A program made the position numbers and the translations under genes. Below are positions 18,020 through 62,903 of a stretch of 64,000 nucleotides of DNA, one piece after another. The notes beneath the pieces were generated by a model. It was not told where the DNA came from, searched no databases, and worked only from the letters and a program-made list of their open reading frames with translations. Location: positions 310,001 through 374,000 of the IMG/VR virus record IMGVR_UViG_3300044797_000098; one strand, given 5' to 3'. Every line of letters starts with the position of its first letter. Position 1 is the stretch's first letter.

Positions 18020-19397
18020 GAAAGCCCCAATGATTTATCTTGGGGATGAATTGCGTTATTAGAAATATTTTCGTAGTAATGTCGATTTTCTTAAAAAACT
18101 ATACATAATCTGATATATACTATAAGATGTATAATAAAACATATTCCATTCGCCTCTTTCCAACCGCTGATCAACAAAATCAACTAATGGAACTTATTGC
18201 TATTCGCAATGACATTTGGAATACACTAATCGATGTAGCAAACGCGTTTTATACTGATACAAAGAAAACGCTAAATAATTATGCAATGCATAAAGAAATA
18301 ACAATTCTAAAACAAACAATAGAAAAACAACACTGGTCAAAACTAAACGCAAAAGCAGCACAACGAGTGGCAACAGGGTTATTCGCTTCATATCAACAAT
18401 TTTTCAACAATATCAAAAAGAATAAACCAGCATCGCTTCCGAATAAACTTGAACCAACAGTCAAAAAATCAATCATATTCAATCAGTCAGGTTGGAATAT
18501 TTTGAAACAAAATAATTCAATCGATGGCAACATAATCGTAATAAATAAAATACCGTTTCAATATAAATCACATATCAAAAATCTCGATGAACTGAATGTC
18601 AAAGAATTAAAAATAAAATACAGAAACGATAAGTGGTTATGTGATTTATGCGTTGAATATAACGAAACCTATCCAGAAACTATCGAACCTAAACGAGTAT
18701 TAGCCATTGATCTCGGATTGAAAAATCTTGGAACAGGTATCGACAGTAATGGCACCATTGTAATAATTCCAAACAAAGCAAAGAAAGTATCCAAACACTT
18801 TGGAGAACAAATAGCAAAAATAGATACAAAAATATCAAAAAAGAAAAAAGGTAGCAGACGATATAAAAAATTGAGAGCAATACGAAGAAAATTATTCAAT
18901 AAAAAGAACGCACAGGTAAAACAAACTCTACATATTCAGAGTAAAAGAATTGTGAATATGAACTATCATACGATAGTAATTGGTGATCTATCCGTAAAAG
19001 AACTAATGAACAAGCAGAACAATAATAAAAAAGGTGTAAGAAAATCTTTCGGTCAATCGAATGTCAGTATGTTTCTAACATATCTATCATATAAAAGCAT
19101 TGGCAAAACCAATATCATAAAAATAGATGAGCGACATACGACGCAACTAAACTCGCTAACAGGTAAGAAGTTTCCAGAAAAAATTGAATTAAAAGATCGA
19201 ACAGTAAAACTAACGGATAGTATTGAGATCGATCGTGATCTCAACTCGGCTATAAATATCTATAACAGATGGTATAGCAACCAAATTGTGCCACTGACAG
19301 CGCCACTGGATTTATTCAGTGTGCTTGAAAAGAGTAATCTTTTCAAGAAAACTTGAAACATAAGAACCCCCGAACATTTATGTCGGGGAGTATGTCA
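18020..19397 (+). mobile_element. Non-autonomous IS200/IS605/IS607-type element carrying tnpB only
   Basis: Left hairpin CCCCAA..TTGGGG (18025-18045), right hairpin CCCCGA..TCGGGG-AGTATGTCA; no TnpA; junctions ambiguous by a shared GA. Confidence 0.88.
18127..19356 (+). CDS. tnpB: RNA-guided endonuclease TnpB
   Basis: HTH start IRLFPT..Q; RuvC LAIDLGLK, VIGDL, IDERHTTQ, IDRDLNSAINI. Confidence 0.92.
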   Translation: MYNKTYSIRLFPTADQQNQLMELIAIRNDIWNTLIDVANAFYTDTKKTLNNYAMHKEITILKQTIEKQHWSKLNAKAAQRVATGLFASYQQFFNNIKKNKPASLPNKLEPTVKKSIIFNQSGWNILKQNNSIDGNIIVINKIPFQYKSHIKNLDELNVKELKIKYRNDKWLCDLCVEYNETYPETIEPKRVLAIDLGLKNLGTGIDSNGTIVIIPNKAKKVSKHFGEQIAKIDTKISKKKKGSRRYKKLRAIRRKLFNKKNAQVKQTLHIQSKRIVNMNYHTIVIGDLSVKELMNKQNNNKKGVRKSFGQSNVSMFLTYLSYKSIGKTNIIKIDERHTTQLNSLTGKKFPEKIELKDRTVKLTDSIEIDRDLNSAINIYNRWYSNQIVPLTAPLDLFSVLEKSNLFKKT

Positions 19398-21587: not shown

Positions 21588-22310
21588 TTGCATAACGATA
21601 TGCAATACTTAATATATAAAATAACCAACACAATCAACAATAAAATATATATCGGGCAGACTAAAAATTTAAAAATGAGAATTGCAAGGCATAAATCCGA
21701 AGCATTAAAAATACATAACACTAAACCTTTATATAGAAGTATAAGAAAAAACGGATTTAAAACTTTTTTATTTTCTATAATAGAGGAATGTAGCAACGCT
21801 AATGTTGATGAACGAGAGATATTTTGGATTAATTATTATAAATCGACTAATAAAAAATATGGTTATAATCTTAGCACAGGCGGTAAAGGGTATGTTGGCA
21901 CAATAAAACCACGAATTTCACCAATGAAAGGCAAAAAACACTCGAAAAAAACTAAAAGAAAAATGTCCGAACAAAGAAAAGGATCTAAAAATCCATTTTA
22001 TGGAAAAACACACACACAAGAAGTGAAAGAAAAATTATCAAAAAATCCTAATAGGAAACATTTTGGAGAGGAAAATCCATTTTACGGTAAAAAACATTCG
22101 AAAAAAACAAAAAATGCTATATCGAAAATGGCATCAAAAAGAGTGGGTGAAAAAAATCCATTCGCAAAATTAAATGCAGTCACCGTATTAGAGATACGGG
22201 AAAAATTTAAAAATAATAAAATATATATGGCCCAGTTAGCAATAGATTATAATATCAGTGAAACAACCGTGGCTAACATAATCAAAAGACGAACTTGGAA
22301 ACATATATAA
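21588..22310 (+). CDS. GIY-YIG homing endonuclease with NUMOD3 repeats and C-terminal HTH
   Basis: LIYKITN..NNKIYIGQT..R; GYN; repeated NPFYGKKHS. Confidence 0.9.
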   Translation: MHNDMQYLIYKITNTINNKIYIGQTKNLKMRIARHKSEALKIHNTKPLYRSIRKNGFKTFLFSIIEECSNANVDEREIFWINYYKSTNKKYGYNLSTGGKGYVGTIKPRISPMKGKKHSKKTKRKMSEQRKGSKNPFYGKTHTQEVKEKLSKNPNRKHFGEENPFYGKKHSKKTKNAISKMASKRVGEKNPFAKLNAVTVLEIREKFKNNKIYMAQLAIDYNISETTVANIIKRRTWKHI

Positions 22311-27896: not shown

Positions 27897-28301
27897 TTAT
27901 AGCAATCGTAATCGATTTATCGATTTACTAACACTACTTTTCAACATAGGCGATAGACTTGCGCAGGTTTCAGTTCCCGGTTCGAGTTTGCCGTTATCTT
28001 TCACAACAAAAAAATTATCTTTTCCGAACTCTGCCTTTAACTCTTCCCACTCTTTTTCGGTCGCCTTCAATATAATCTTGGTCGAGCCGTTTGTCAACCA
28101 GCGCGTAGTTAGTTCCGTATGATTTATTTCGTTTTGCGGAAGACAATGTAATTTTGCGTTTATTGCAAGGGCTTTAAAATAATGAATCAACGCATACTGA
28201 ATCGAATGACCTATCTGTTCCCCAGTCTTTCCGATGCTCATATTCAGTTCTTCTCTTACAATAACATACATAACCACTGGGTCGTAATTATTTTCAGGCA
28301 T
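27897..28301 (-). CDS. Peptidyl-tRNA hydrolase 2 (Pth2) family
   Basis: MYVIVR.EL.MS.GK...Q.GH, KIILK, V.D.G...PG..T. Confidence 0.8.
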   Translation of the reverse strand: MPENNYDPVVMYVIVREELNMSIGKTGEQIGHSIQYALIHYFKALAINAKLHCLPQNEINHTELTTRWLTNGSTKIILKATEKEWEELKAEFGKDNFFVVKDNGKLEPGTETCASLSPMLKSSVSKSINRLRLL

Positions 28302-28348: not shown

Positions 28349-28645
28349 CTAAATTAGCATTAAATACTTTTCAATATCTTTTGCATACTTCTCATATAAT
28401 GGATTATATACTTTATTGTCTTCAATAATTTCTTCTATTGTAAGTTCATCATCGGGATAGGAACGTTCTTTTGCCCAATGTTTGAATGCTAATGCCATAT
28501 TAGCACCGACATTTAATCCTCTGTGTTCATATATACGAAACATTCCATACCATCCGCCAATCCCATTACCGGGATTTGGTATTCGACTATATTCTTCAAC
28601 AAAATCTGTATCTATAATACAACCATTATCCGTTTTTATGAACAT
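28349..28645 (-). CDS. Small protein, family B, tag EKYLMLI
   Basis: IIDTDFVE..YEHRGLNVGAN. Confidence 0.78.
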   Translation of the reverse strand: MFIKTDNGCIIDTDFVEEYSRIPNPGNGIGGWYGMFRIYEHRGLNVGANMALAFKHWAKERSYPDDELTIEEIIEDNKVYNPLYEKYAKDIEKYLMLI

Positions 28646-28646
28646 A

Positions 28647-30293
28647 TTAATTACTCTTCTTGATCATTGCTTTACAATCAGCAAGAAAATAACCCTTCAT
28701 CTGTACAAAAATCATTTCGAAAAACCTCTCACCAGATTTGGGGAAAGATTTCATCCACGATCCTTGCAAAAACTTCTTATGCGCCTCTTCTTTTACGCTC
28801 TTTGGGTTTTTCAGGAATGTCATTAGATACTTGCGATGATATTCTTCTTTGCTAATGTATTCCATATTTTCTGCGACAATGATGTTATCCAAAAATAGTT
28901 TGGCGAACGCTGTGCCTGCGTGTCCTTTTCCGTGTCGTTTTTCAATATGTGATAGCAAGTTTATTATTCCTCCACCACCGAATGCCCTTAATTCGTCATC
29001 AATTCTTGGCTGAACCATATCGAACGGTGCTAAAATTGGCTTATCTCCACCATCCGGTTCCCACTCTTGTAAGTAAGCGTTTTCTTTTTCCCATTTATTT
29101 TTTGCAGCATAATAGCCAACACTAAGTTCTGCAACTCGTTTTTCTGCTGCTTCATATAGTTCTTTCTTTACATTGATCATATTATCGAGATCGACGCATA
29201 CTTTTTTCTTGAACTCTTCTGTTAGCGTTTTTACATTTGCTGGAATAACTTTGATCGAAGATAGGTGTTCTTTTATTTCAATAGGAAAATCAGCGTATGA
29301 TGTTTCCCCTTGTTTTAGCAATTTTCTCGAAGGCTCATCTGGTATGTAATAATCTGTTGCTTTAATTTCTTGTGTAGAAAATGTATCGAGGCCAGATTTA
29401 TCTTTTAGGACCTTCTTGAATGTTGCCATTGTATCCGTATTCATATTCGGATACATATTGTCAATCAGTAATGCTGGTTTTTTAGTGGTTCTATTAATTA
29501 CGAAACGAACCATACAACGATTGAGCATCTTGCTACCATAACCCGGAACCTCATCTTTATCGGATGATATATAAATAACTCCTACATATCTTGATGATAT
29601 TGATCCTATTAATCCTCTTGATTGAGGCGCATTCCACGCTTGACACGATACAATACCACGCATAGATATAGTTCCGATATCCCAAGCGCCTTCTTCTCCA
29701 TATGAAGAAAAATTAACCATATATTTTTTATTCGGGATATTTACACGAGAAAAGTTTTTGAACTCTTGGTATTGGTCTAATTTCATTAGATTGACGCCAA
29801 GAGGCTCTAACTCCGTCCATATTTTTCCAGCAAGACGAAGAATTGCTTCATCTTTGCGGAATGTTGGGTTTTTATCACCATTGAATACATCTGATTGTAA
29901 TCTTAAAACTACTTTACCGTCTTCTACTTTGACACAATTAGCCTGTTTCATTGTATATTGAACGGTTTGTAGCAGGCTGATCATAGATTGTATTTTACAA
30001 CACAATTCGTTTCTATTTTTTTCTGTTGATTTTAATGCTGCTTCGAGAATGGGATATAATCTGCTTTGTGCTGCATACATCTCATTAAGTATTTTATTAT
30101 TGAGACGAGTTCCTTCCGTTGTTGCCTCAGCGGTATTCATAATTGTGCAAGGCTCTCGGAAGTTTGCAAGCCCAATCTTTGGAAAGACTTTATCTATTTT
30201 AGATAGGGATTTAAATACTTCGTGGTTTTTTATCCACTCTGGGAATGGTCGTTTAGTATTAACTATGTATTCGATACCTTTTGCGTTATTCAT
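28647..30293 (-). CDS. Large uncharacterised protein, family F copy 5
   Basis: EGAWDIGTISMRGIVSCQAW core. Confidence 0.85.
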   Translation of the reverse strand: MNNAKGIEYIVNTKRPFPEWIKNHEVFKSLSKIDKVFPKIGLANFREPCTIMNTAEATTEGTRLNNKILNEMYAAQSRLYPILEAALKSTEKNRNELCCKIQSMISLLQTVQYTMKQANCVKVEDGKVVLRLQSDVFNGDKNPTFRKDEAILRLAGKIWTELEPLGVNLMKLDQYQEFKNFSRVNIPNKKYMVNFSSYGEEGAWDIGTISMRGIVSCQAWNAPQSRGLIGSISSRYVGVIYISSDKDEVPGYGSKMLNRCMVRFVINRTTKKPALLIDNMYPNMNTDTMATFKKVLKDKSGLDTFSTQEIKATDYYIPDEPSRKLLKQGETSYADFPIEIKEHLSSIKVIPANVKTLTEEFKKKVCVDLDNMINVKKELYEAAEKRVAELSVGYYAAKNKWEKENAYLQEWEPDGGDKPILAPFDMVQPRIDDELRAFGGGGIINLLSHIEKRHGKGHAGTAFAKLFLDNIIVAENMEYISKEEYHRKYLMTFLKNPKSVKEEAHKKFLQGSWMKSFPKSGERFFEMIFVQMKGYFLADCKAMIKKSN

Positions 30294-30300
30294 TTTAGCC

Positions 30301-31881
30301 TCAATTTATCACTTTCGCTAATTCGAGTTTGATGAACTCTGTCATTGTTGAATATAAAAACTCTGTGAATGTTTCCATATTGACTGTTCTCGATGTGTTT
30401 GCTGACACAATCGCTTTAACATTTGCTAATACTCTTGGGAACGCCTTTCTTCTATTCATCATAAGGTCCATTAAGTATCTTCTGTAATAAGATTTACTAT
30501 CAGTAAATCCTTTACTATCTGTTTGCGGAATGTTTGTTAACATATGTAAAACTATGTTTTCACATAACGGCGTGAATGGTGTATTCATTCGTATATTTTT
30601 AATTGTTTTTTGTATTTCATCATCAACAATAAGATTACCATCATAGATATCTTCCATCTTTTTAGCGAAAAACAATGGAAGACCTACACGAAAACTTTTA
30701 ACATTTCGTTCGATTTCCTCTTTATTATTATTGAGAAAATAAAACACATTTAGATCGTGTCGTGATTTTAGCGGTGTGTCCTGATATGACCAATCTCTAT
30801 TAGATATTTGATCTCTAATTTTTTCTGGTGGTGAATAGATATGTCTTATCTTATTACCGAGTTCTGGTGCATAATACACCGGAAGTTTTGTTCTTGATTG
30901 AAGCGATTTTGTGAAAATCGTGCATACTTCTTTATCATATTCAGGATACATTTTATCGATTAAAATACACGGTGATTTTTCATCTGCATCGATTGCATAT
31001 CTAACAACACAACGACGGATCATCTTGGTTCCAAGATTAGAATAACTTGGGTGATCTTCTGATTTAACTCCTGATGTGAGGTAAATAATACCAACGAACC
31101 TCGATAGGATCGATCCTACAAGGCAACGAGGATATTCACCATCCCATCGCTGACAAGACTTTATTCCTCGCATTGACATTGTTGCAATATCCCAAGCGCC
31201 TTCTTTTCCTTCGGAAGAGAATATAACACTATACTCTTTGTTTGGCATATTTTCTTTGCTGAAAACTTTGAACTGCGTTGTTTGTTCGAGATTTATGAAT
31301 GGTATTCCAAAAGCACCACATTTATCCTTTATTGCATTCATTATGCGCAATAATGGCTCTCCCTTACGGAAAACATTCTTGCCTTTATCATCGACAATAT
31401 CACCAATTAATTTCAATACGATTTTACCATCAGCCGAAACGACTGAACCATTTATGACATTGCCATCATACGGATCCATATATGTATGAAGTCGTTTCAT
31501 AATATCAGAAAATAAGTATAAATCATTCATTCTGATTTTATTTGTTGCTCTATCTTCTTTTGAATATAGATACTGTATAGTATCAGCCATATTAAATGAT
31601 GCGTCTCTTGCTTGGGCAACCGCATCAGCCATTATTGCCATCAGATTAAATACATAACTTCCTTCTTTTTTAACATTTTCAAAAGGCTTATCGATTATTG
31701 TTTTATCAATAAAATTAGGAAGCCCAACATTACGGAAAACTTTTTTGACCTTTGTTGGATTTTTAAATAATGTATGCTCTTTTAGAAACGGTGGAATGTT
31801 TTTATCCTTAAAAAGATCTGTTGAAAGAATAACTTTACTGTCTGTGGTTTCAGACTTTTTAATTTTTGCTTCGTCTTTCAT
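30301..31881 (-). CDS. Large uncharacterised protein, family F copy 4
   Basis: EGAWDIATMSMRGIKSCQRW core. Confidence 0.85.
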   Translation of the reverse strand: MKDEAKIKKSETTDSKVILSTDLFKDKNIPPFLKEHTLFKNPTKVKKVFRNVGLPNFIDKTIIDKPFENVKKEGSYVFNLMAIMADAVAQARDASFNMADTIQYLYSKEDRATNKIRMNDLYLFSDIMKRLHTYMDPYDGNVINGSVVSADGKIVLKLIGDIVDDKGKNVFRKGEPLLRIMNAIKDKCGAFGIPFINLEQTTQFKVFSKENMPNKEYSVIFSSEGKEGAWDIATMSMRGIKSCQRWDGEYPRCLVGSILSRFVGIIYLTSGVKSEDHPSYSNLGTKMIRRCVVRYAIDADEKSPCILIDKMYPEYDKEVCTIFTKSLQSRTKLPVYYAPELGNKIRHIYSPPEKIRDQISNRDWSYQDTPLKSRHDLNVFYFLNNNKEEIERNVKSFRVGLPLFFAKKMEDIYDGNLIVDDEIQKTIKNIRMNTPFTPLCENIVLHMLTNIPQTDSKGFTDSKSYYRRYLMDLMMNRRKAFPRVLANVKAIVSANTSRTVNMETFTEFLYSTMTEFIKLELAKVIN

Positions 31882-31904
31882 TTGTCAAGTTTCTCCGATT
31901 ACTA

Positions 31905-33452
31905 CTATATTTTAGCCACTGTTTGATCGTTAGTCAAGTCGTTAGATTTATTAGTTAATAACTCTTTTAATTGCAATTTTATACCAGTCGATATTTGGTT
32001 ATGAGCTGGTTCAAGCAGTTTAGTAAGAATTGCAGAATTAATTCTTTCGTTTTTATTTAAATTGAAGTATTTGTTTATACGCTTAACAAAAGATTGTATA
32101 ACTTTTTTGTTATATTTTTTTGATAGAAAAGAAAAACATAACTGTTTATAGTAATCTGATGAACTATCGAATGTATTTTTGGATACTTCTTTTATTATCG
32201 TATCAGCAATAGAATTAAAATACTCGTCAGTCAGATATTTCATATCATTACAAACAATTATTTTTTGCAATGATTTTTTAATCTTATCGTTTTTTGATAT
32301 GCAAGATATATCTGAATTAAAACTAATTGGTTTGGAATGAGATCTAATTGCATTACGAAGTCTGGTTTCTCTATTTTTTAGATTTGTTTTGAGAGGTGGT
32401 TCTTTAATAGGCAATTTTGTAGCAACCATAGTATCCATATATGATTTTGTGCGTTCTGGAAGACTTTCTCTAATTTTATTAGGTGGAAGATATAGATTTT
32501 TAATCTGGATATAAGTATTATTATACGGATAGGCTACGACTCGTATTTTGTTATTTGTTTTATTTTCTATGAATGCCCTGAATGATTCCATCACTTTACC
32601 ATCATATTCAGGATACATTTTATCAATGAGAATAATCGGTTTTTGAGTTTGAGAATCAATTGTATATCTAACAACTGACCTTCTTATCATTTTTGATCCA
32701 AGACCATCAACATCTTTTCCTGATGTTAAATATATTATACCAACACAAGGATCAATAAGTGAGCCAACTAATTGTGTCTTAAATCTTCCACCCCAACTTT
32801 GACAAGACTTTATTCCACGCATAGACATTGTTGCAATGTCCCATAACCCTTCATTGCCATTTGATGAAAAAACTATTTGATAGTTTTTCATTGGAACATT
32901 ATCGGTGCTAAATCGTTTAAAATCTTTCATTTCTTCGAGTTTTGGAAGCACTTTACCTATGTGCAATGATTTAATTTCATTATATATTTTATTATATACT
33001 TTAAATATGCTTTCGTTTTCTCTGAAAACAATTTTGCCTTGTTGATCGAGAACATCATATGTCAATTTTATCGTTATTTTACCATCATCTGATGTTTTAA
33101 CAAAACTGGATATGTTATAGGTATCTGGCATTCTTTCAACAACATATCTCCAATAATTAAGTCTATTGATTTTTTCGATTGTTTTAGGGTTTTTATTATG
33201 ATTTTTATTTTCTAAAACATACGACTTGGCTCTAATCTTATTAGAAAGAATATAATATATTGACCAAAATAAATTATTACCAGCCTCTTTTGCAATGTCA
33301 GAATTGTCGAACTTACAAGTTTCGGAACAATTAAATAATCCTATTGATGGAAAAACTTTACTTACTTTTGTCAATGATGTAAGTTTTTTATGACTTACAA
33401 GAAACTTCGGAAGTTTTTCATTTTTTAGAAACTCTTGAATGTTAGTCCGCAT
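31905..33452 (-). CDS. Large uncharacterised protein, family F copy 3
   Basis: EGLWDIATMSMRGIKSCQSW core. Confidence 0.85.
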   Translation of the reverse strand: MRTNIQEFLKNEKLPKFLVSHKKLTSLTKVSKVFPSIGLFNCSETCKFDNSDIAKEAGNNLFWSIYYILSNKIRAKSYVLENKNHNKNPKTIEKINRLNYWRYVVERMPDTYNISSFVKTSDDGKITIKLTYDVLDQQGKIVFRENESIFKVYNKIYNEIKSLHIGKVLPKLEEMKDFKRFSTDNVPMKNYQIVFSSNGNEGLWDIATMSMRGIKSCQSWGGRFKTQLVGSLIDPCVGIIYLTSGKDVDGLGSKMIRRSVVRYTIDSQTQKPIILIDKMYPEYDGKVMESFRAFIENKTNNKIRVVAYPYNNTYIQIKNLYLPPNKIRESLPERTKSYMDTMVATKLPIKEPPLKTNLKNRETRLRNAIRSHSKPISFNSDISCISKNDKIKKSLQKIIVCNDMKYLTDEYFNSIADTIIKEVSKNTFDSSSDYYKQLCFSFLSKKYNKKVIQSFVKRINKYFNLNKNERINSAILTKLLEPAHNQISTGIKLQLKELLTNKSNDLTNDQTVAKI

Positions 33453-33460
33453 ATTATGAC

Positions 33461-35053
33461 CTATGGAAGTGGCAAGGGTTCGATTTTCATTTCGTTTCTT
33501 TTATCAACTACTTTTTTCAACTCTTCTTTTATTTCTTTTTCCATCAATGGGAAAACACTTTGCATCAATGGCACGAAGTTTCTTATACCGAAACGATGTC
33601 CTGCTTTTAGATACAACTCACCGTTTAGTTTTTTAATCAGTTCATTCTTTGACGAATGAATGGCTTTATTTCTATGATTGAAAAAACTATAATATACACG
33701 ACGAATATAAGTATCAGAATTAGTAAATTGTGTCTTATCAACATTATCAATTATTTGTTTGGCAAGACTACTACCGATAGCATTCAATGTATGATCATAT
33801 GAATAGTATCTATTTTTATTTGGAAGAATAAGCAATTTCATTGCTGGCTTTATTGTTCTTGGAACTTTTTCTATATCTATTTTTTTAATAGCATCAACAA
33901 ATGCTTTTGAAAAGATTTTTATGAACTTATTCTCTTTTTTCCTGCTATTTTTGTCGAATAAGACTGCTTGTTTGTCTTTTTTATTGCCAGATTGATTTTT
34001 AATTTTACAATCCTGATATGACTGAATCGATTCATATTCATCATACGGACGAGATTTACCTTCCCTGCTGGTGTCTTTTAGTTTCTTTCTAATTGGATTT
34101 AGTGGAAGATATGACTCTTGTAATAATTTGTAATCCATATTTTCAGCATAAAAAACATCGAACTTGTTATTGGTTTTTGTTTCTATAAACTTTTTAAATT
34201 GAGCAATAACTTTATTATCGCCCGATGGATACATTCTGTCGATTAGAATATACGGTTTATGGTTTTTACCATCAATAACGAACCTAACAACGCATCGCCG
34301 AACCATTTTACTACCATATTCATTAAACTTACCATTGGTCGTCATATAAATTATGCCAACGAATGGATCTATGACTGAACCTATTGTGCAATACTTGTAT
34401 TCTCCTCTATCCCAACTTTGGCAGGAAGATATACCACGCATTGACATAGTGCCAATATCCCAAGCACCTTCTGCACCATCGGATGAAAATACTATTTTGA
34501 ACCCATTATTCGGAATGTTGTCCGTGCTAAATGCTTTAAACGAATAAGCGTTCTCCAACGGATCTAATCCAGCAACATTTGCCTCTTGAAGCATTTCGCT
34601 TAATTTATTATATACTCGGAATAGACTTTCATTCTTTCTGAAAACTGGTCTATTATCGCCTTCTATTGTTATGTTGTCGGATAGTTTTAATGAAACTCGA
34701 CCGTTATTAACTTGAATAATATCGTTGGATTTTTTTAATTGATTGAAAACTGCTTGAAGCAGGGTGGAACAATTTTCTGTTTTTTCTTTATTGACTTTGT
34801 TTTTTATTGTCTTTTTATGCCTATTAAGTAATGTAATGCTGTATGATATTATAGCATTAATATCACCAATCAAAATACCAGCAGATTGCTTTGCTTGATC
34901 TATATTATCTACATTCGCATCCTCAATACAATTAGGAAGTCCTATTGACGGAAAGACTTTTTTGATCGTCTTTACTTCCTTGAAAATGGGATGAGACGAA
35001 AACCATTTAGGATATTTTTTGTCTTTAAAGATTTCTTTTATTGGTGTTGCCAT
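33461..35053 (-). CDS. Large uncharacterised protein, family F copy 2
   Basis: EGAWDIGTMSMRGISSCQSW core. Confidence 0.85.
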   Translation of the reverse strand: MATPIKEIFKDKKYPKWFSSHPIFKEVKTIKKVFPSIGLPNCIEDANVDNIDQAKQSAGILIGDINAIISYSITLLNRHKKTIKNKVNKEKTENCSTLLQAVFNQLKKSNDIIQVNNGRVSLKLSDNITIEGDNRPVFRKNESLFRVYNKLSEMLQEANVAGLDPLENAYSFKAFSTDNIPNNGFKIVFSSDGAEGAWDIGTMSMRGISSCQSWDRGEYKYCTIGSVIDPFVGIIYMTTNGKFNEYGSKMVRRCVVRFVIDGKNHKPYILIDRMYPSGDNKVIAQFKKFIETKTNNKFDVFYAENMDYKLLQESYLPLNPIRKKLKDTSREGKSRPYDEYESIQSYQDCKIKNQSGNKKDKQAVLFDKNSRKKENKFIKIFSKAFVDAIKKIDIEKVPRTIKPAMKLLILPNKNRYYSYDHTLNAIGSSLAKQIIDNVDKTQFTNSDTYIRRVYYSFFNHRNKAIHSSKNELIKKLNGELYLKAGHRFGIRNFVPLMQSVFPLMEKEIKEELKKVVDKRNEMKIEPLPLP

Positions 35054-35060
35054 TATGATC

Positions 35061-36464
35061 TCATAGGTATTTAGAATAGATTTTTGCGTATTTTGACTTC
35101 GGTGATTTCGGTTTCTTTGAAAGTTTTGCTAACTCTTTATTTATAATTGGAATTACTTTCTTTGATGCTTCTGATACGATTTTTTTTCTTATATTTTCAG
35201 TCTTTTTTGAAGGTGAAAAAAAACCATACCATACATCACTCATATGGTTGTTTATGGCTTTCTTTACATCTTCCACATCAGATTTAAATTCTGGTTTGGT
35301 TATATACCGCGGATTATCATTCCACAATCTTAAATCATCTAAAACATTAACATAATCGACATCTTTATTTTTTACATCTCTAATAACATTTTTATATTCT
35401 TCGGGAACATCTGCGAGTTTTAATTTTTTCACACACGATATAAAACTTTTTGCTACTGCATTATCAATTCGATCTGATATTTTTTCCAATTCTCTACCGG
35501 TCCTATCATCATAAGTTTCATCATCAGTTTCATCATCATAATCGATCTCATTATCGCGATATGATCTGCAATCGTAATCTAAATTGCTAACTACTTCGCT
35601 TGTCGGTATAACAACATTGGAACGCAACCCATTTTTTAAATCGATTATATCGAACTTGTTTTTAGTTTTTTCTTTTAGAAAAGTAATGAACTCTTTCATT
35701 ACGGCTTTATTATATTCAGGATACATAGTATCTATAACAATGCTTGGTTCTTTGCTTCGTTCTTTTACAACGAACCTAACAATACATCGACGAAGCATCT
35801 TGCTACCATAATCTGTTTTTGTGCCAGAGGTTAGATATATAATACCAGTGAATGGATCGACAATTGATCCGACTAATTTACCACAATACTCCTTACCCCA
35901 GCCCTGACACGAAGATATACCACGCATTGACATCGTAGCAATATCCCATAGTCCTTCCATACCATCGGAAGAAAAACGAACTGTATGTTTAGCGTTTGGT
36001 ATATTTATTGAACTGAATTGCTTAAAAGCACTAATGTTTTCTAACGCTGGAAGATATGATTGGTATTGTTTATGTAATTTATTATATACTTTGAATACAC
36101 CCTCGCCTTGTTTGAACACAATTTTTTTATCTTTATCCGCAATAGGTTTTGTGAGATTGAGGGATATTTTACCATCTTTTTTTACAACCGATTTAACAAG
36201 AGTATTAGATAGATTGCTTATCAATGTATAGTCTTGTTTATAAATAGGAATATAATTATGTAATGCACAACTCATATTTTCAACTAAATTTAACGCAGTT
36301 TCCTTTATTTCTTCTGTGTTATCTATGCTTACAACTTTTTCACAATTAGGAAGTCCAATATCTGGGAAGATTTTCCTTACAACTTTTACTGTTTTGAATA
36401 TAGGATGTTGTCTTATGAAGACAGGAAAATCTTTTTTAGCGAATATCTGTTTTACTGTTGGCAT
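35061..36464 (-). CDS. Large uncharacterised protein, family F copy 1
   Basis: EGLWDIATMSMRGISSCQGW core. Confidence 0.85.
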   Translation of the reverse strand: MPTVKQIFAKKDFPVFIRQHPIFKTVKVVRKIFPDIGLPNCEKVVSIDNTEEIKETALNLVENMSCALHNYIPIYKQDYTLISNLSNTLVKSVVKKDGKISLNLTKPIADKDKKIVFKQGEGVFKVYNKLHKQYQSYLPALENISAFKQFSSINIPNAKHTVRFSSDGMEGLWDIATMSMRGISSCQGWGKEYCGKLVGSIVDPFTGIIYLTSGTKTDYGSKMLRRCIVRFVVKERSKEPSIVIDTMYPEYNKAVMKEFITFLKEKTKNKFDIIDLKNGLRSNVVIPTSEVVSNLDYDCRSYRDNEIDYDDETDDETYDDRTGRELEKISDRIDNAVAKSFISCVKKLKLADVPEEYKNVIRDVKNKDVDYVNVLDDLRLWNDNPRYITKPEFKSDVEDVKKAINNHMSDVWYGFFSPSKKTENIRKKIVSEASKKVIPIINKELAKLSKKPKSPKSKYAKIYSKYL

Positions 36465-36467
36465 AAT

Positions 36468-36680
36468 TTATAGTCCTGTGATTTGTTTTCGATAGATTTC
36501 AATCTGTTCTGTTGTTAATTTATCTGAACTCTCTACACGAACTGCGAATGGAAGCCTTGCAAGTTCCCATTTAGCAACTCCTTCGTGATCATATTCCCAA
36601 TATGCAATGTCTCCACGCGACGAAGTAATCATTAGAAAATATGTTGCCATTTTTCTTCTCCTACGAGGTTTTATTAACAA
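36468..36680 (-). CDS. Hypothetical protein
   Basis: Tiling ORF; start may be MATYF. Confidence 0.55.
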   Translation of the reverse strand: MLIKPRRRRKMATYFLMITSSRGDIAYWEYDHEGVAKWELARLPFAVRVESSDKLTTEQIEIYRKQITGL

Positions 36681-37585: not shown

Positions 37586-38575
37586 TCAATTCTCTTTACA
37601 CACATTCACATAAAAAACATTACCATCAATTTCAATCTTTTTTGCATCCTTAGGATCATCATTATATGACATCAGTGCAATTTCATTCGCGAGCAGTTCT
37701 TTTTTCAACTTATCTTTATACTTTACGATGACATTAGCGGGTTTTGGCATACAAAAGATTTCGATATATACTCGATCTGTCAATTCCAATTCGAGTTCTT
37801 TACGCACATTTTGCAATGCAGACTTAAAATCAGCAATAAATCCTCTTTCCAATAACTCATCGTTCAAGTTAGTATCAAGAATGATTACCCCTGATTTATT
37901 CGATGAGGAAGCATAACCCGCTTTTGATACGAACTCAACTTCAATATCTGCTAATGTTAGATCAATATCGCACATTCTAACTGCTTCTTTGTTTTCGAGC
38001 AGTTTATACAAGTCTTTACGATCAGCAAAACTCATCTTTGCCAGTTCAATTTTCAACGCATTACCTTGCTTGCCTCGTCCAGTTTTGCCAAGATTTCTAA
38101 AATTAGGCTTCAATACCATATCGGTGAATTGATTTGTGTCTTCGACGAATACAACTTTATCAACATTTAATTCATCGCCAAGCACATTAGCGTAATCGTT
38201 GTTCTTGCAATCAACATACACCATATAATTTTGCACTTGTTTATCTGCGAATAACACATATGCTGTGCTCAATGGTTGTCGATTACGGATTTTAACTTCC
38301 GCACGAACCTTATGTCCCATCTCGCACATATCACGAATTGACCGCATACGATAGATTAGTTCGTAATCGATATCACCAACTGGTGATTTATTTACACTAA
38401 CGATAGCGAAGTTCGGATCGTTTTGATATTCCGCCTGATATTCTTTGATCAACTGATCTGATTTATCATCAATGGAATTGAACGAGGCGAATGCAGTCCA
38501 TTGCTGAACAACACCTTCATCATTTGTGGAATTATAGCGAATTGTGTATTCACGCACGGTTTTTGTTTCCCTCAA
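37586..38575 (-). CDS. Stand-alone C-terminal part of a type-2 isoleucyl-tRNA synthetase (DUF5915-like); no catalytic core
   Basis: ID.EL..RM..IR.....G..VR....IRNRQPL and LDT.L..EL...G...DF..ALQ..RKE..LE.TDR; no HIGH/KMSKS. Confidence 0.75.
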   Translation of the reverse strand: MRETKTVREYTIRYNSTNDEGVVQQWTAFASFNSIDDKSDQLIKEYQAEYQNDPNFAIVSVNKSPVGDIDYELIYRMRSIRDMCEMGHKVRAEVKIRNRQPLSTAYVLFADKQVQNYMVYVDCKNNDYANVLGDELNVDKVVFVEDTNQFTDMVLKPNFRNLGKTGRGKQGNALKIELAKMSFADRKDLYKLLENKEAVRMCDIDLTLADIEVEFVSKAGYASSSNKSGVIILDTNLNDELLERGFIADFKSALQNVRKELELELTDRVYIEIFCMPKPANVIVKYKDKLKKELLANEIALMSYNDDPKDAKKIEIDGNVFYVNVCKEN

Positions 38576-38798
38576 TCAGTCCTGTTGCATTCCAGTCTTT
38601 ACCATTGATCCACTGCATAAGATTTGCAATACCAGTTAGATTTTCTACAACACCGGCTTTACGGAAGTTTTTACTTGGTTCTCTTGCTACATAATAGATA
38701 TGACCGCCCCAAAATTGATCGCCCATATAATTGATAGACATTTCTCTACCATTATTTTCTTCTTCCCAAGATATTCCGCCATCCATATCTATAATCAT
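38550..38798 (-). CDS. Hypothetical protein
   Basis: Tiling ORF. Confidence 0.55.
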   Translation of the reverse strand: MIIDMDGGISWEEENNGREMSINYMGDQFWGGHIYYVAREPSKNFRKAGVVENLTGIANLMQWINGKDWNATGLIEGNKNRA

Positions 38799-39277
38799 TA
38801 CAAAATCGCCTTGCTAAATTGTTTATAGTCTTTATATTGTTTAGTAATCCTATTCCAAAATCCCCACGAATTATTTTTTCTACTACCAGTGAAAAACAAT
38901 GTCCAAGGCCCATTATTTTCATCAATAAGTTCAACGCGATGAAAATCATTGTGTGTGAAAAAATTGAATGACAATGGCTTTACAAAACGACGAGTGATTG
39001 TATCATCGGGATTGCGTCGTTCTTCCCAATAACCTTGCGTCAATACGAAACTGAATGCCCACTTTGCAGGATGATGATGCAACAAGTATGTTTTTCCACC
39101 AACACCATCATTAGGATCAGTATCTAAATCGCTACTTCGGAAGTGGTGTAAAAATAGGTTTCCCAACTCTCTATCTTTCAATAATAGGTAATATCTTGTT
39201 AGATACGGATTGCCATCTGGTTTTGGAATTGTGATATTTGGGATATGTTCAATCAACGAACGAAGAATAGTAAGCAT
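38798..39277 (-). CDS. Cupin-fold phage protein
   Basis: LHHF..SD...HHHP..W..SFVL..GYWE...HRVEL...WTLFFTG; GGAG RBS. Confidence 0.65.
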   Translation of the reverse strand: MLTILRSLIEHIPNITIPKPDGNPYLTRYYLLLKDRELGNLFLHHFRSSDLDTDPNDGVGGKTYLLHHHPAKWAFSFVLTQGYWEERRNPDDTITRRFVKPLSFNFFTHNDFHRVELIDENNGPWTLFFTGSRKNNSWGFWNRITKQYKDYKQFSKAIL

Positions 39278-39537: not shown

Positions 39538-40037
39538 GGGGCTTTTGACTTTTTGTCCTTATTAGAAACAACTCTTGGCATTTCAACACCGAAGATAGTT
39601 CGATATATATTTGCCAAGCAAGTTTCCGAGCATGCAACTCTATTCGGTAAGTCCTGCGTTTCATATGCCTTGTTCATATTGCCAATGGGTTTTTGGCAAC
39701 TACAACATTTGGCCATACTTTTGAATGTTGATTGTGCCCATCGTTCAAGTTTTTCGAGGTCTTTTTTATTATGTGGACCGAAGTATGTTTTCGTTCCTTT
39801 ACCGTCGTGATTGACAAGTGATATGAGTTTTCGTTCATCCCAATATGAATTATTCCACTCATCTAAAATACGAATAGCAACATTTACTGCATCGATAGGA
39901 CTTAATAGATTTTTTTGTTCCCCCAAAAACTTTGCAGGAAGTATGTCTTTACCAGCATATTTTTTACCACCACAAGATATTTCAACAACTAATTGATTAT
40001 CTTCGTAATATCGTTGGCGACTCGTAAAAAAAGACAA
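39534..40037 (-). CDS. Hypothetical protein with C-terminal Zn finger
   Basis: GGAGGT RBS before TTG at 40037; CCSC...CSETC. Confidence 0.6.
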   Translation of the reverse strand: MSFFTSRQRYYEDNQLVVEISCGGKKYAGKDILPAKFLGEQKNLLSPIDAVNVAIRILDEWNNSYWDERKLISLVNHDGKGTKTYFGPHNKKDLEKLERWAQSTFKSMAKCCSCQKPIGNMNKAYETQDLPNRVACSETCLANIYRTIFGVEMPRVVSNKDKKSKAP

Positions 40038-40106
40038 AATACACCTCCAAAAAATTATCTTTGTCGATATATACATATAACCACATATGAATATATGGAG
40101 ACAAAA

Positions 40107-40949
40107 ATGACAAGAAAACAAAGATCGGATACGATTATTTTAGACAAAAACCAATTACAAAATGACTATAATGAATTAAAAAGTGTAAGGAAGGTTGGTA
40201 AAAAATACGGTATTTCTCGTGAAACGGTAAGAAAATATATACATTTATATAATCTTAATTATATTAAACCAATTAAATATAATTGTAATGAAAATTTTTT
40301 CAATGAAGAAACTGAATCTGCATATTATTTTGCTGGATTTTTAGCAGCCGATGGCTGCCTATTTAAGAAAAAAGGAGAAAGTTATGAAGTCAAACTCACA
40401 CTGAAAGACACCGACAAAGATATTTTATTTAAATTTAAACAATCAATTAATTCTGATGCACCAGTAATTGAGACGAAAAGATTGTGTAGAGTTTTTACTA
40501 GATATTTCAATATAACAACAGCGCAATTTAGAATTGCATCTAAAATTGTGTTCAATAATCTAAAACAAAAGTTTCAATTAACTCCTCGTAAATCATTAAC
40601 TCTTAAATTTCCGATAAAACTAAAAAACAACGAGTTAATTAGACATTTCATTCGTGGTTATTTCGATGGTGATGGGTCGATTTATATCAATCATACAGAT
40701 AAAAAAAGTGGTATAAAACATATGCGAATTAGTATTGTAGGAACAAAACATATGTTGGAAAACATTAGATATGTATTAATGCGTGAATGCATAATAAAAA
40801 AGGGAACAATTATAAAAATTAATAATATTTATGAACTTCGATATGGCGGTAATAATATTGTGTATGCTATATATAAATATTTATATAAAGATGCTACATT
40901 ATTTCTTGAACGAAAAAAACTTAAATTTGAATATATCTCACCAAGATAG
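40107..40949 (+). CDS. LAGLIDADG homing endonuclease with N-terminal HTH
   Basis: AYYFAGFLAADGC and HFIRGYFDGDGSI; GGAG RBS before ATG 40107. Confidence 0.9.
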   Translation: MTRKQRSDTIILDKNQLQNDYNELKSVRKVGKKYGISRETVRKYIHLYNLNYIKPIKYNCNENFFNEETESAYYFAGFLAADGCLFKKKGESYEVKLTLKDTDKDILFKFKQSINSDAPVIETKRLCRVFTRYFNITTAQFRIASKIVFNNLKQKFQLTPRKSLTLKFPIKLKNNELIRHFIRGYFDGDGSIYINHTDKKSGIKHMRISIVGTKHMLENIRYVLMRECIIKKGTIIKINNIYELRYGGNNIVYAIYKYLYKDATLFLERKKLKFEYISPR

Positions 40950-50735: not shown

Positions 50736-51545
50736 ATGAGCCATTATGTATATATATTGCAAAATAAAATTAACTTGAAGATTTATGTCGGATATTCCGC
50801 AAATCCAAAAATAAGATGGAATAGTCATAAAAACACCGCGAATAACCCAAAACATAAAAATCATCACGAACTAATATATAATGCAATACGCAAACACGGT
50901 TGGGAAAATTTTGACAAACAAATTATTGAAGAATGGGAAACTAAAAAAGAAGCGCTAGAAGCAGAGATGTTTTGGATAGAATTTTTTCGAACCAATATTC
51001 ATATTTATGGAAAAGAATATGGGTATAATCTTGGCCCAGGTGGAACTGGCGGTCGCGTAAAAGGTGGAAAACTTTCTATTGAACATAGGCGCAAATTAAG
51101 TGAAGCGCATAAAGGAAGAACCGCGTGGAATAAAGGGAAACCGTCCCCACTAAAAGGTCGAAAAAGAACAACACCGCTTACTGAAAATGAAAAACAAAAC
51201 CTTGCAAGACTTGCTGATTTTCATAGAGGTAGAAAACATTCACCAGAACGAATAGAAAAATCAAGACAATCACGCTTAGGAAAGAAAACAAAACCACATA
51301 CGGAAGAACATAAGCGCAAAATAAGTGAGGCTCAAAAAGGAAAAAAGAAACCAAAACACATATTTTCAGAAATAATTGAAAAACAAATTGTTCAAGAATA
51401 TAAATCTGGTAAATCTATAAATAAATTAAAAATTGAATATAAATGTAGTTGGACTGCAATCAAATCAATATTACTTATGTATATAGCGGAAAACGATATA
51501 AGAAAAGATGATGGTAAAAAAACGAGAAAAATTATTCGAAAATAA
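50736..51545 (+). CDS. GIY-YIG homing endonuclease with NUMOD3 repeats
   Basis: YVYILQN..N.KIYVG, GYN, HRRKLSEAHKG repeats. Confidence 0.9.
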   Translation: MSHYVYILQNKINLKIYVGYSANPKIRWNSHKNTANNPKHKNHHELIYNAIRKHGWENFDKQIIEEWETKKEALEAEMFWIEFFRTNIHIYGKEYGYNLGPGGTGGRVKGGKLSIEHRRKLSEAHKGRTAWNKGKPSPLKGRKRTTPLTENEKQNLARLADFHRGRKHSPERIEKSRQSRLGKKTKPHTEEHKRKISEAQKGKKKPKHIFSEIIEKQIVQEYKSGKSINKLKIEYKCSWTAIKSILLMYIAENDIRKDDGKKTRKIIRK

Positions 51546-62762: not shown

Positions 62763-62830
62763 CAGGGATAGGTAAGGCTCGGACGCTGGTTTGTCAAGTC
62801 CAGTCAAAAAACTCAATGATATCAAGGCAG

Positions 62831-62903
62831 TCGGCGTGGTAGGGGTCGAACCTACTAATCGAAGAATATAAGTCTTCTGTCTTAACCGTTTGACGACACG
62901 CCG
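62831..62903 (-). tRNA. tRNA-Ile (anticodon UAU)
   Basis: Acceptor CGGCGTG/CACGCCG+A; D stem GTC/GAC; anticodon stem GAAGA/TCTTC with loop CT-TAT-AT; T arm GTAGG-TTCGACC-CCTAC; CCA not encoded. Confidence 0.9.

Follow-up and report, generated by a model that had tools for sequence, protein, structure and literature searches.

Five tandem paralogs with an invariant cysteine loop and a predicted GNAT-like core in a very large environmental phage

A stretch of 64,000 nucleotides from the virus record IMGVR_UViG_3300044797_000098 (bases 310001-374000, hereafter the window) carries five co-directional open reading frames (ORFs) on its minus strand, at 28647-36464 in window coordinates, which encode paralogous proteins of 467-548 amino acids (aa). 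The IMG/VR record has a size of 406,470 bp, a CheckV completeness of 95% and a GC content of about 33%. The first gene of the array is P5 (35061-36464, 467 aa), followed by P4 (33461-35053, 530 aa), P3 (31905-33452, 515 aa), P2 (30301-31881, 526 aa) and P1 (28647-30293, 548 aa), which is the last; counted from P1 to P5, the gaps between them measure 7, 23, 8 and 7 nucleotides (nt). All five proteins are basic, with isoelectric points of 9.1-9.7. In a MAFFT alignment P2-P5 match P1 end to end at 28-31% identity and the five proteins share 63 invariant columns. A profile built from them finds exactly these five places in the 406-kb genome and no others (E 1e-174 to 1e-230), and a comparison of all ORFs of the genome with one another turns up no other tandem array of large paralogs. 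Likeness at the DNA level is limited to short patches around the shared motif (64-88% over 26-331 nt), which argues against recent duplication or gene conversion within the array. All sampled 31-mers of the array are present in one peat metagenome run; the runs holding array 31-mers are assembled contigs of DNA runs, and no RNA run with array sequence was listed in the run search.

The five paralogs share two conserved blocks. The N-terminal block contains the invariant residues P18, H24, K35, F37, G41, L42 and N44 (P1 numbering throughout), and the core block reads FSS.G.EG.WDI.T.SMRGI.SCQ.W, followed at intervals by G.IY, G.KM..R..VR, P...ID.MYP and SY.D. Within it, WDIxT(M/I)SMRGIxSCQxW serves as a signature of the family. 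In P1 this signature loop (WDIGTISMRGIVSCQAW, residues 204-220) is encoded at 29634-29684 on the minus strand, with the codon of Cys217 at 29643-29645; its counterparts lie on the same strand at 31144-31194 in P2, 32793-32843 in P3, 34412-34462 in P4 and 35898-35948 in P5. Conservation is very uneven along the proteins: the paralogs are 44% identical to one another in the core and 15% identical in a hairpin insertion (residues 53-118) and in the C-terminal third.

To extend this picture beyond the array we aligned 253 homologs to a hidden Markov model (HMM) of the family and scored residue conservation, with counts based on 251-253 sequences. Cys217, R212, G213, W220 and R259 are present in 251 of 251 homologs, and K35, N44, N185, T208, S210, G253, Y281, Y333 and D335 are each more than 98% conserved. 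Altogether about 25 polar or aromatic residues are conserved in at least 98% of the 251 homologs, and 250 of them have Asp or Glu at position 278. Judged from this alignment, residue conservation across the homologs is far above chance. The sole conserved histidine, H24, is kept in 89%, with Asn as its main substitute, so that the family has no strict Cys-His pair. The signature is also kept in divergent short copies of 300-341 aa, and the short copies L008-L010, like the five paralogs, retain all of the roughly 25 highly conserved polar and aromatic residues; the completeness of this set in each copy argues that each is functional rather than a decayed pseudo-enzyme. An earlier description made from the letters of the window (the sequence-only reading) had claimed five tandem paralogs with a conserved motif and a set of conserved core residues. 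The same ORFs at exactly the same coordinates bear out the former, and the latter extend to some 250 homologs.

The family is widespread and unnamed. The Pfam, PHROG, NCBIfam and PADLOC models gave no meaningful match to the five paralogs or to family members, and a Pfam scan of 63 family members together with the five paralogs returned nothing at E <=1. Among 50,697 deposited phage records, tblastn and megablast produced no match or noise at E=1, a scan of 185,579 GTDB species genomes with the signature pattern found no relative, and sequence-profile searches of the PDB yielded nothing significant. By contrast with these null results, a word-indexed search recovered 84 relatives, all unnamed or called 'hypothetical protein' and many of them on contigs of 300-470 kb, and an exhaustive profile search of 1.84 billion representatives returned 584 clusters (at 50% identity) with E <=1e-3, of which 396 reach E <=1e-30; many of the 584 come from contigs of 350-470 kb. 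The 222 homologs that were retrieved are spread over all five paralog lineages, P1 being the closest for 99. A separate family of about 366 aa, which lacks the C-terminal domain, has 253 members in the ESM-Atlas.

Arrays of three to five copies occur in five further phage contigs, in the same orientation and order and inside a syntenic replication block. In contig L006 five copies are followed by a gene for the peptidyl-tRNA hydrolase PTH2 and by a 626-aa ORF of the same length as the window's DNA ligase; contig L012 has five copies and a fragment, followed by PTH2 (two genes away) and the ligase; L013 and L007 have four copies each, and L014 has three full-length copies and a fragment. A flap endonuclease belongs to the replication block, which in some contigs also has a UvrD helicase or a GluRS-type synthetase (tRNA-synt_1c). 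A complete relative of 428 kb has three additional dispersed copies, whose neighbourhoods show no common partner gene.

A maximum-likelihood tree places each array position in a separate clade (support at least 100/99), with the order collinear across the six contigs. The P1, P2 and P5 orthogroups are represented in all six, that of P1 with support 100/100, and the P3 and P4 orthogroups in the window, L006 and L012. Since the positions form collinear orthologous clades, the duplications must predate the split between these phages. Identity is higher within orthogroups than between paralogs for every domain, the hairpin and the C-terminus among them. Against L006, the closest relative, the five array genes are 55-74% identical, and the ratio of non-synonymous to synonymous substitution rates (dN/dS) is 0.12-0.27 (P2, 0.16; P3, 0.27; P4, 0.15; P5, 0.24), C-terminal domains included, although dS is near saturation in this comparison. 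By these comparisons the five paralogs are ancient and evolve under purifying selection. The selection that had been supposed from the size of the array alone is borne out, as selection for its retention, by its collinear conservation in six phage contigs.

We then asked what fold the proteins might adopt. The full-length AlphaFold2 model of P1, computed from a 63-sequence alignment, has a mean predicted local distance difference test score (pLDDT) of 91.6 and a predicted TM score (pTM) of 0.58. It begins with a short N-terminal segment that closes with a strand at residues 45-51, followed by a long helical hairpin (54-115) and by helices at 151-165 and 176-184, which draw generic helical-bundle matches. 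An alpha/beta core follows at about 186-345, and a helical C-terminal domain occupies residues 356-547. The conserved unit is approximately residues 1-346, comprising the N-terminal segment, the helical bundle and the predicted GNAT-fold domain described below. Searches with the whole P1 model (Foldseek, VIA-align) gave weak matches to GNATs at residues 188-314, and the ESM-Atlas shape search concurs.

Because large models blur single-domain matches, residues 119-350 were modelled separately (pLDDT 87.3), with the same secondary structure as in the full-length model. When this domain was compared with the PDB by Foldseek, all 12 matches at E <=1e-3 were GNATs, the best at 1.5e-4, and GNAT clusters of the Atlas align with it over about 110 residues with a root-mean-square deviation of 3.8-4.0 A. 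These matches span residues 70-196 of the domain model, that is, residues 188-314 of the full protein. The secondary structure of both models and the GNAT matches together delimit a GNAT-like core at about residues 189-343 of P1 (29265-29729, minus strand). Its elements run beta1 (189-196), alpha1 (199-207), signature loop (208-222), alpha2 (223-233), beta2, beta3, beta4 (273-277), alpha3 (286-300) and beta5, and the predicted core follows the order characteristic of the GNAT fold (beta1-alpha1-alpha2-beta2-beta3-beta4-alpha3-beta5-alpha4-beta6). Each of the scores is modest; it is the unanimity of the matches that makes a GNAT-like fold credible for the modelled core.

In this predicted topology the signature loop occupies the place of the alpha1-alpha2 substrate loop of GNATs, D/E278 lies at the end of beta4 and Y281 in the beta4-alpha3 loop. 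By the secondary structure of the models, the conserved residues are distributed over beta1 and beta3, the end of beta4, the alpha1-alpha2 and beta4-alpha3 loops and the stretch that precedes the last strand; in GNATs these elements line the substrate and donor cleft. Going by the model topology, they would therefore cluster around that cleft. The best structural matches to the core are uncharacterised AlphaFold-DB clusters (A0A7W1CJV7, A0A1F7WCV8, A0A373VQA6, A0A7W1MCP8 and others), which score Foldseek E-values of 7e-7 to 1e-4 with probability 1.0 but TM scores of 0.36-0.47. They are unannotated and have other architectures, with fusions to DUF4116 repeats, WG repeats or a reverse transcriptase. 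Such matches suggest a wider unnamed superfamily that may also be present in cellular organisms.

We tentatively favour the view, at somewhat less than an even chance, that the array proteins belong to a new family of GNAT-fold transferases whose donor site is non-canonical and whose helical domains, specific to each paralog, point a single chemistry at different targets. We observe paralogy, an invariant motif, a predicted GNAT-like fold, a missing coenzyme A (CoA) motif, conservation of the array and purifying selection; from these we infer an enzymatic activity, a role for the cysteine, a donor, targets and a time of action. Each protein would transfer a chemical group by means of the GNAT cleft while dispensing with the canonical acetyl-CoA pyrophosphate loop. 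The putative active site would be formed by the alpha1-alpha2 loop T-x-S-M-R-G-I-x-S-C-Q-x-W together with D/E278, Y281, R259/R263 and Y333/D335, with Cys217 acting as nucleophile or as an essential ligand. The array genes would be co-transcribed with genes of replication and nucleic-acid metabolism, and the helical hairpin and the C-terminal helices, which are specific to each paralog, would steer the shared chemistry towards different macromolecules during infection, possibly a host or phage protein, tRNA or DNA.

Several elements of this proposal had been anticipated by the sequence-only reading, with mixed results. Of the folds it had named for checking, GNAT was found; neither a papain-like nor an amidoligase fold was among the fold-search matches listed, and the resemblance to PcfJ failed in HMM and profile-profile comparison. 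It had suggested a Cys nucleophile or acyl/nucleotide transfer: acyl transfer is a reasonable class given the GNAT fold; the canonical CoA motif is missing, and the cysteine has no invariant His partner. It had also pictured one core retargeted by variable domains, which fits the finding that hairpin and C-terminus differ between paralogs, are conserved among orthologs and evolve under purifying selection; that there are five substrates would be a further step. A more specific version of the transferase proposal seems rather unlikely to hold in full. It sees a GNAT-fold catalytic class without a CoA site, with a Cys-centred active loop and perhaps a non-CoA donor (aminoacyl-tRNA or another activated metabolite), like Mom of phage Mu, which is compared below; the paralogs would then be deployed as a fixed set of three to five enzymes, with distinct macromolecules of host or phage as targets of covalent modification, in a clade of soil and peat phages of 350-470 kb.

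Two observations weigh against a transferase. The CoA pyrophosphate motif (Q/R-x-x-G-x-G/A, motif A) occurs in residues 268-300 of none of 252 homologs; 210 of 253 have no Gly in residues 278-290, where a near-invariant Y281-P282 is found instead. The second is that the conserved order and one-to-one orthology of the array would be expected equally of a multi-subunit assembly. This is the principal alternative, which we regard as unlikely: the paralogs would be subunits of one hetero-oligomeric assembly, for instance a replication or takeover scaffold or machine, their GNAT-like domain would mediate interactions or bind a ligand, and the invariant residues would hold a partner or cofactor common to all instead of acting catalytically on five different substrates. 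The separate and well-supported orthogroup at each collinear position, with P1, P2 and P5 never missing from the six contigs, is what such subunits would show, as are the narrow spacing of the genes (7-23 nt) and their similar lengths. Nor is there any sign of recent expansion or turnover, unlike the lineage-specific churn typical of gene families in an arms race. Copy number, however, is not constant, with three copies and a fragment in L014, four in L007 and L013 and five in the window, L006 and L012, and the complete 428-kb phage adds its three dispersed copies. Paralogous subunits often lose residues of this kind, whereas here all copies, even the solitary ones of 300-341 aa (L009, L010), keep the full polar invariant set. 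The 253-member family of about 366 aa, which stands alone and lacks the C-terminal domain, also counts against this alternative.

It is quite improbable, in our estimate, that the array proteins are divergent members of the PcfJ-domain family (PF14284), possibly with an anti-defence role as the plasmid neighbourhood of PcfJ hints. PcfJ, an uncharacterised domain that occurs on conjugative plasmids and in phages, has a single invariant Cys, located in the loop that follows an EG-containing helix, and by eye its layout is alike: EG-x2-L-x-HC-VG in PcfJ and EG-x-WDI...SCQ-x-W in the array family, each followed by a helix and three strands. In a protein-language-model feature search with the core, the PcfJ set accounts for 78 of the 100 nearest named clusters (score 0.86), but the tool is calibrated such that anything below 0.9 counts as a lead only. 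The PF14284 HMM matched neither the paralogs nor proteins of two related phages at E <=10, and was absent from the Pfam scans of 63 members. Profile comparison with hhalign gave probabilities of 0.2% over the full length and 0.4% core to core, although the PcfJ alignment is shallow (15 sequences) and the comparison has limited power. The structural neighbours of PcfJ in the Atlas are PcfJ proteins only, while those of the array family are GNATs, and the His of the invariant HC of PcfJ is Ser in the array family (HCVG versus SCQxW). We found no bridge between the two through a family represented by gene L011, whose relatives carry LRV repeats and not PcfJ. Sequence comparison thus does not support PcfJ membership of the array family, and our literature search found nothing on PcfJ function or on similar arrays.

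Two observations concern PcfJ itself. On plasmid pCF10 (L015 35873-37983) the founding PcfJ gene adjoins a gene annotated as a member of the Cas9 inhibitor family AcrIIA9, with DpnD/PcfM one gene further; this neighbourhood hints at an anti-defence setting. Outside the window, at G000:C1:213442-213717 (L011 982-1794, minus strand), a protein joins LRV/HEAT repeats to an N-terminus that weakly resembles PcfJ (16.5 bits, motif GTKWCIT). The match starts upstream of the first start codon of the ORF, whose start or frame may be miscalled.

Very improbable, though compatible with an enzymatic role rather than exclusive of it, is the idea that the five proteins are packaged in the virion and ejected, to act on the host at once, with the shared N-terminal block as a capsid-targeting or processing signal. 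Paralogous packaged proteins are known in large phages, such as the internal proteins of T4 and the inner-body families of phiKZ, and the N-terminal 50 residues are conserved across all of the paralogs, each of them basic. That block is modelled as folded (pLDDT 92-94) and includes the strand at 45-51, which does not resemble a free signal peptide; the genes lie among those of replication and nucleotide metabolism and not beside recognisable structural genes, and no prohead-protease site could be defined. A papain-like or other Cys-His hydrolase was rejected for want of an invariant His and, as with an amidoligase, because no such fold appeared among the listed fold-search matches.

The array lies among genes of replication and of nucleic-acid metabolism. 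It is flanked by an NAD-dependent DNA ligase and PTH2 on one side and by a DUF5915 protein and a 5'-3' exonuclease (flap endonuclease) on the other, with a helicase and several nucleases elsewhere in the window, and this neighbourhood recurs in the contigs of relatives. Pfam models picked by guess for capsid, terminase and DNA polymerase B had no match in this divergent genome, and a scan for promoters and terminators gave results no better than those for shuffled sequence. The PTH2 gene (27897-28301, minus strand) adjoins the array in the window and in L006, lies nearby in L012 and is absent in L013 and L014. The stand-alone protein matching DUF5915 (PF19302) has 329 aa and is encoded at 37586-38575 on the minus strand. 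A tRNA-Ile gene with anticodon UAU is found at 62830-62903 (minus strand), so that translation-related genes also surround the array.

Small ORFs that flank the array are conserved in the closest relative only. Directly upstream of the array, at 36468-36650 on the minus strand, is a 60-aa ORF that possibly belongs to the same transcription unit, an association that is uncertain; it is 90% identical in L006 (3698-3880), where it has the same position, which is a higher identity than that of any of the five array genes, and it was not found in L012-L014. Just downstream, a 98-aa ORF (28349-28645, minus strand) belongs to a small paralog family that has four copies near the L006 array and no family match.

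On the scale of the genome, 183 of 207 large ORFs are on the minus strand, and plus-strand ORFs resemble mobile elements. In the window these include a transposase (phrog_506; 18127-19356), an HNH-type endonuclease (39993-40949) and a GIY-YIG homing endonuclease (50736-51545), and by BLASTP clustering the GIY-YIG gene shares a dispersed paralog family of five members with a further plus-strand ORF (21588-22310). A gene at 38798-39277 on the minus strand, unusual as an auxiliary gene of a phage, encodes a 159-aa protein that matches a cysteine dioxygenase PHROG (phrog_4786, E 1e-21).

Taken together, the family is real, widespread and unannotated and, as modelled, has a known fold without the cofactor motif that defines that fold, which points to a putative new branch of the GNAT superfamily. 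About 584 unannotated sequence clusters now have a predicted fold and a sharply defined candidate active site, and a clade of very large environmental phages has kept the array. Should the proteins prove to be enzymes, they would add to the recent finding that GNATs of phages can turn to unconventional donors in modifying nucleic acids or host machinery, and the five paralogs would be natural variants of a single chemistry that differ in specificity; otherwise they would illustrate how a GNAT fold can be taken over as a structural module.

The nearest known systems are the GNATs themselves, for which we considered RimI (7n1l), the S. aureus GNAT 3t9y, the aminoglycoside acetyltransferase 5f46, GNA1 (6yug) and Hat1. 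Sequence-profile searches showed no similarity of the array family to these GNATs, whose CoA pyrophosphate loop it lacks (the PF00583 model, Acetyltransf_1, had no match in the whole genome at E <=10 and had matches in all 14 control genomes), and it carries a 15-residue invariant alpha1-alpha2 loop with a cysteine. Its core is moreover embedded in proteins of about 500 aa, between an N-terminal helical bundle and a C-terminal helical domain, and encoded as three to five tandem paralogs. On the predicted structures, the family is a variant of the GNAT fold and not a canonical GNAT.

Such departures have a precedent in phages. The GNAT Mom of phage Mu takes glycine from Gly-tRNA and attaches it to DNA adenine, with no acyl-CoA donor; Arg, Ser and Asp residues are essential to it, and it carries a helical insertion specific to its family (PMC13219725). 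The jumbo phage PA5oct was reported to have five Mom enzymes, and GNATs of jumbo phages have been predicted to modify RNA polymerase or ribosomal proteins (PMC7824862). Mom (PF25680, PDB 8bv8) forms a homodimer and has 241 aa in this record, whereas the array proteins have 467-548 aa; the Cys signature was not identified in Mom, of which no alignment was examined. We rejected Mom membership, since the Mom HMM had no match in the genome at E <=10 and hhalign gave a probability of 0.7%; nor does Mom look like a structural relative, 8bv8 being outside the 50 best structural matches and generic GNATs inside. Mom would therefore serve as a functional analogy for the array family rather than as its relative, and given its use of a charged tRNA the position of a peptidyl-tRNA hydrolase gene next to the array may be of interest.

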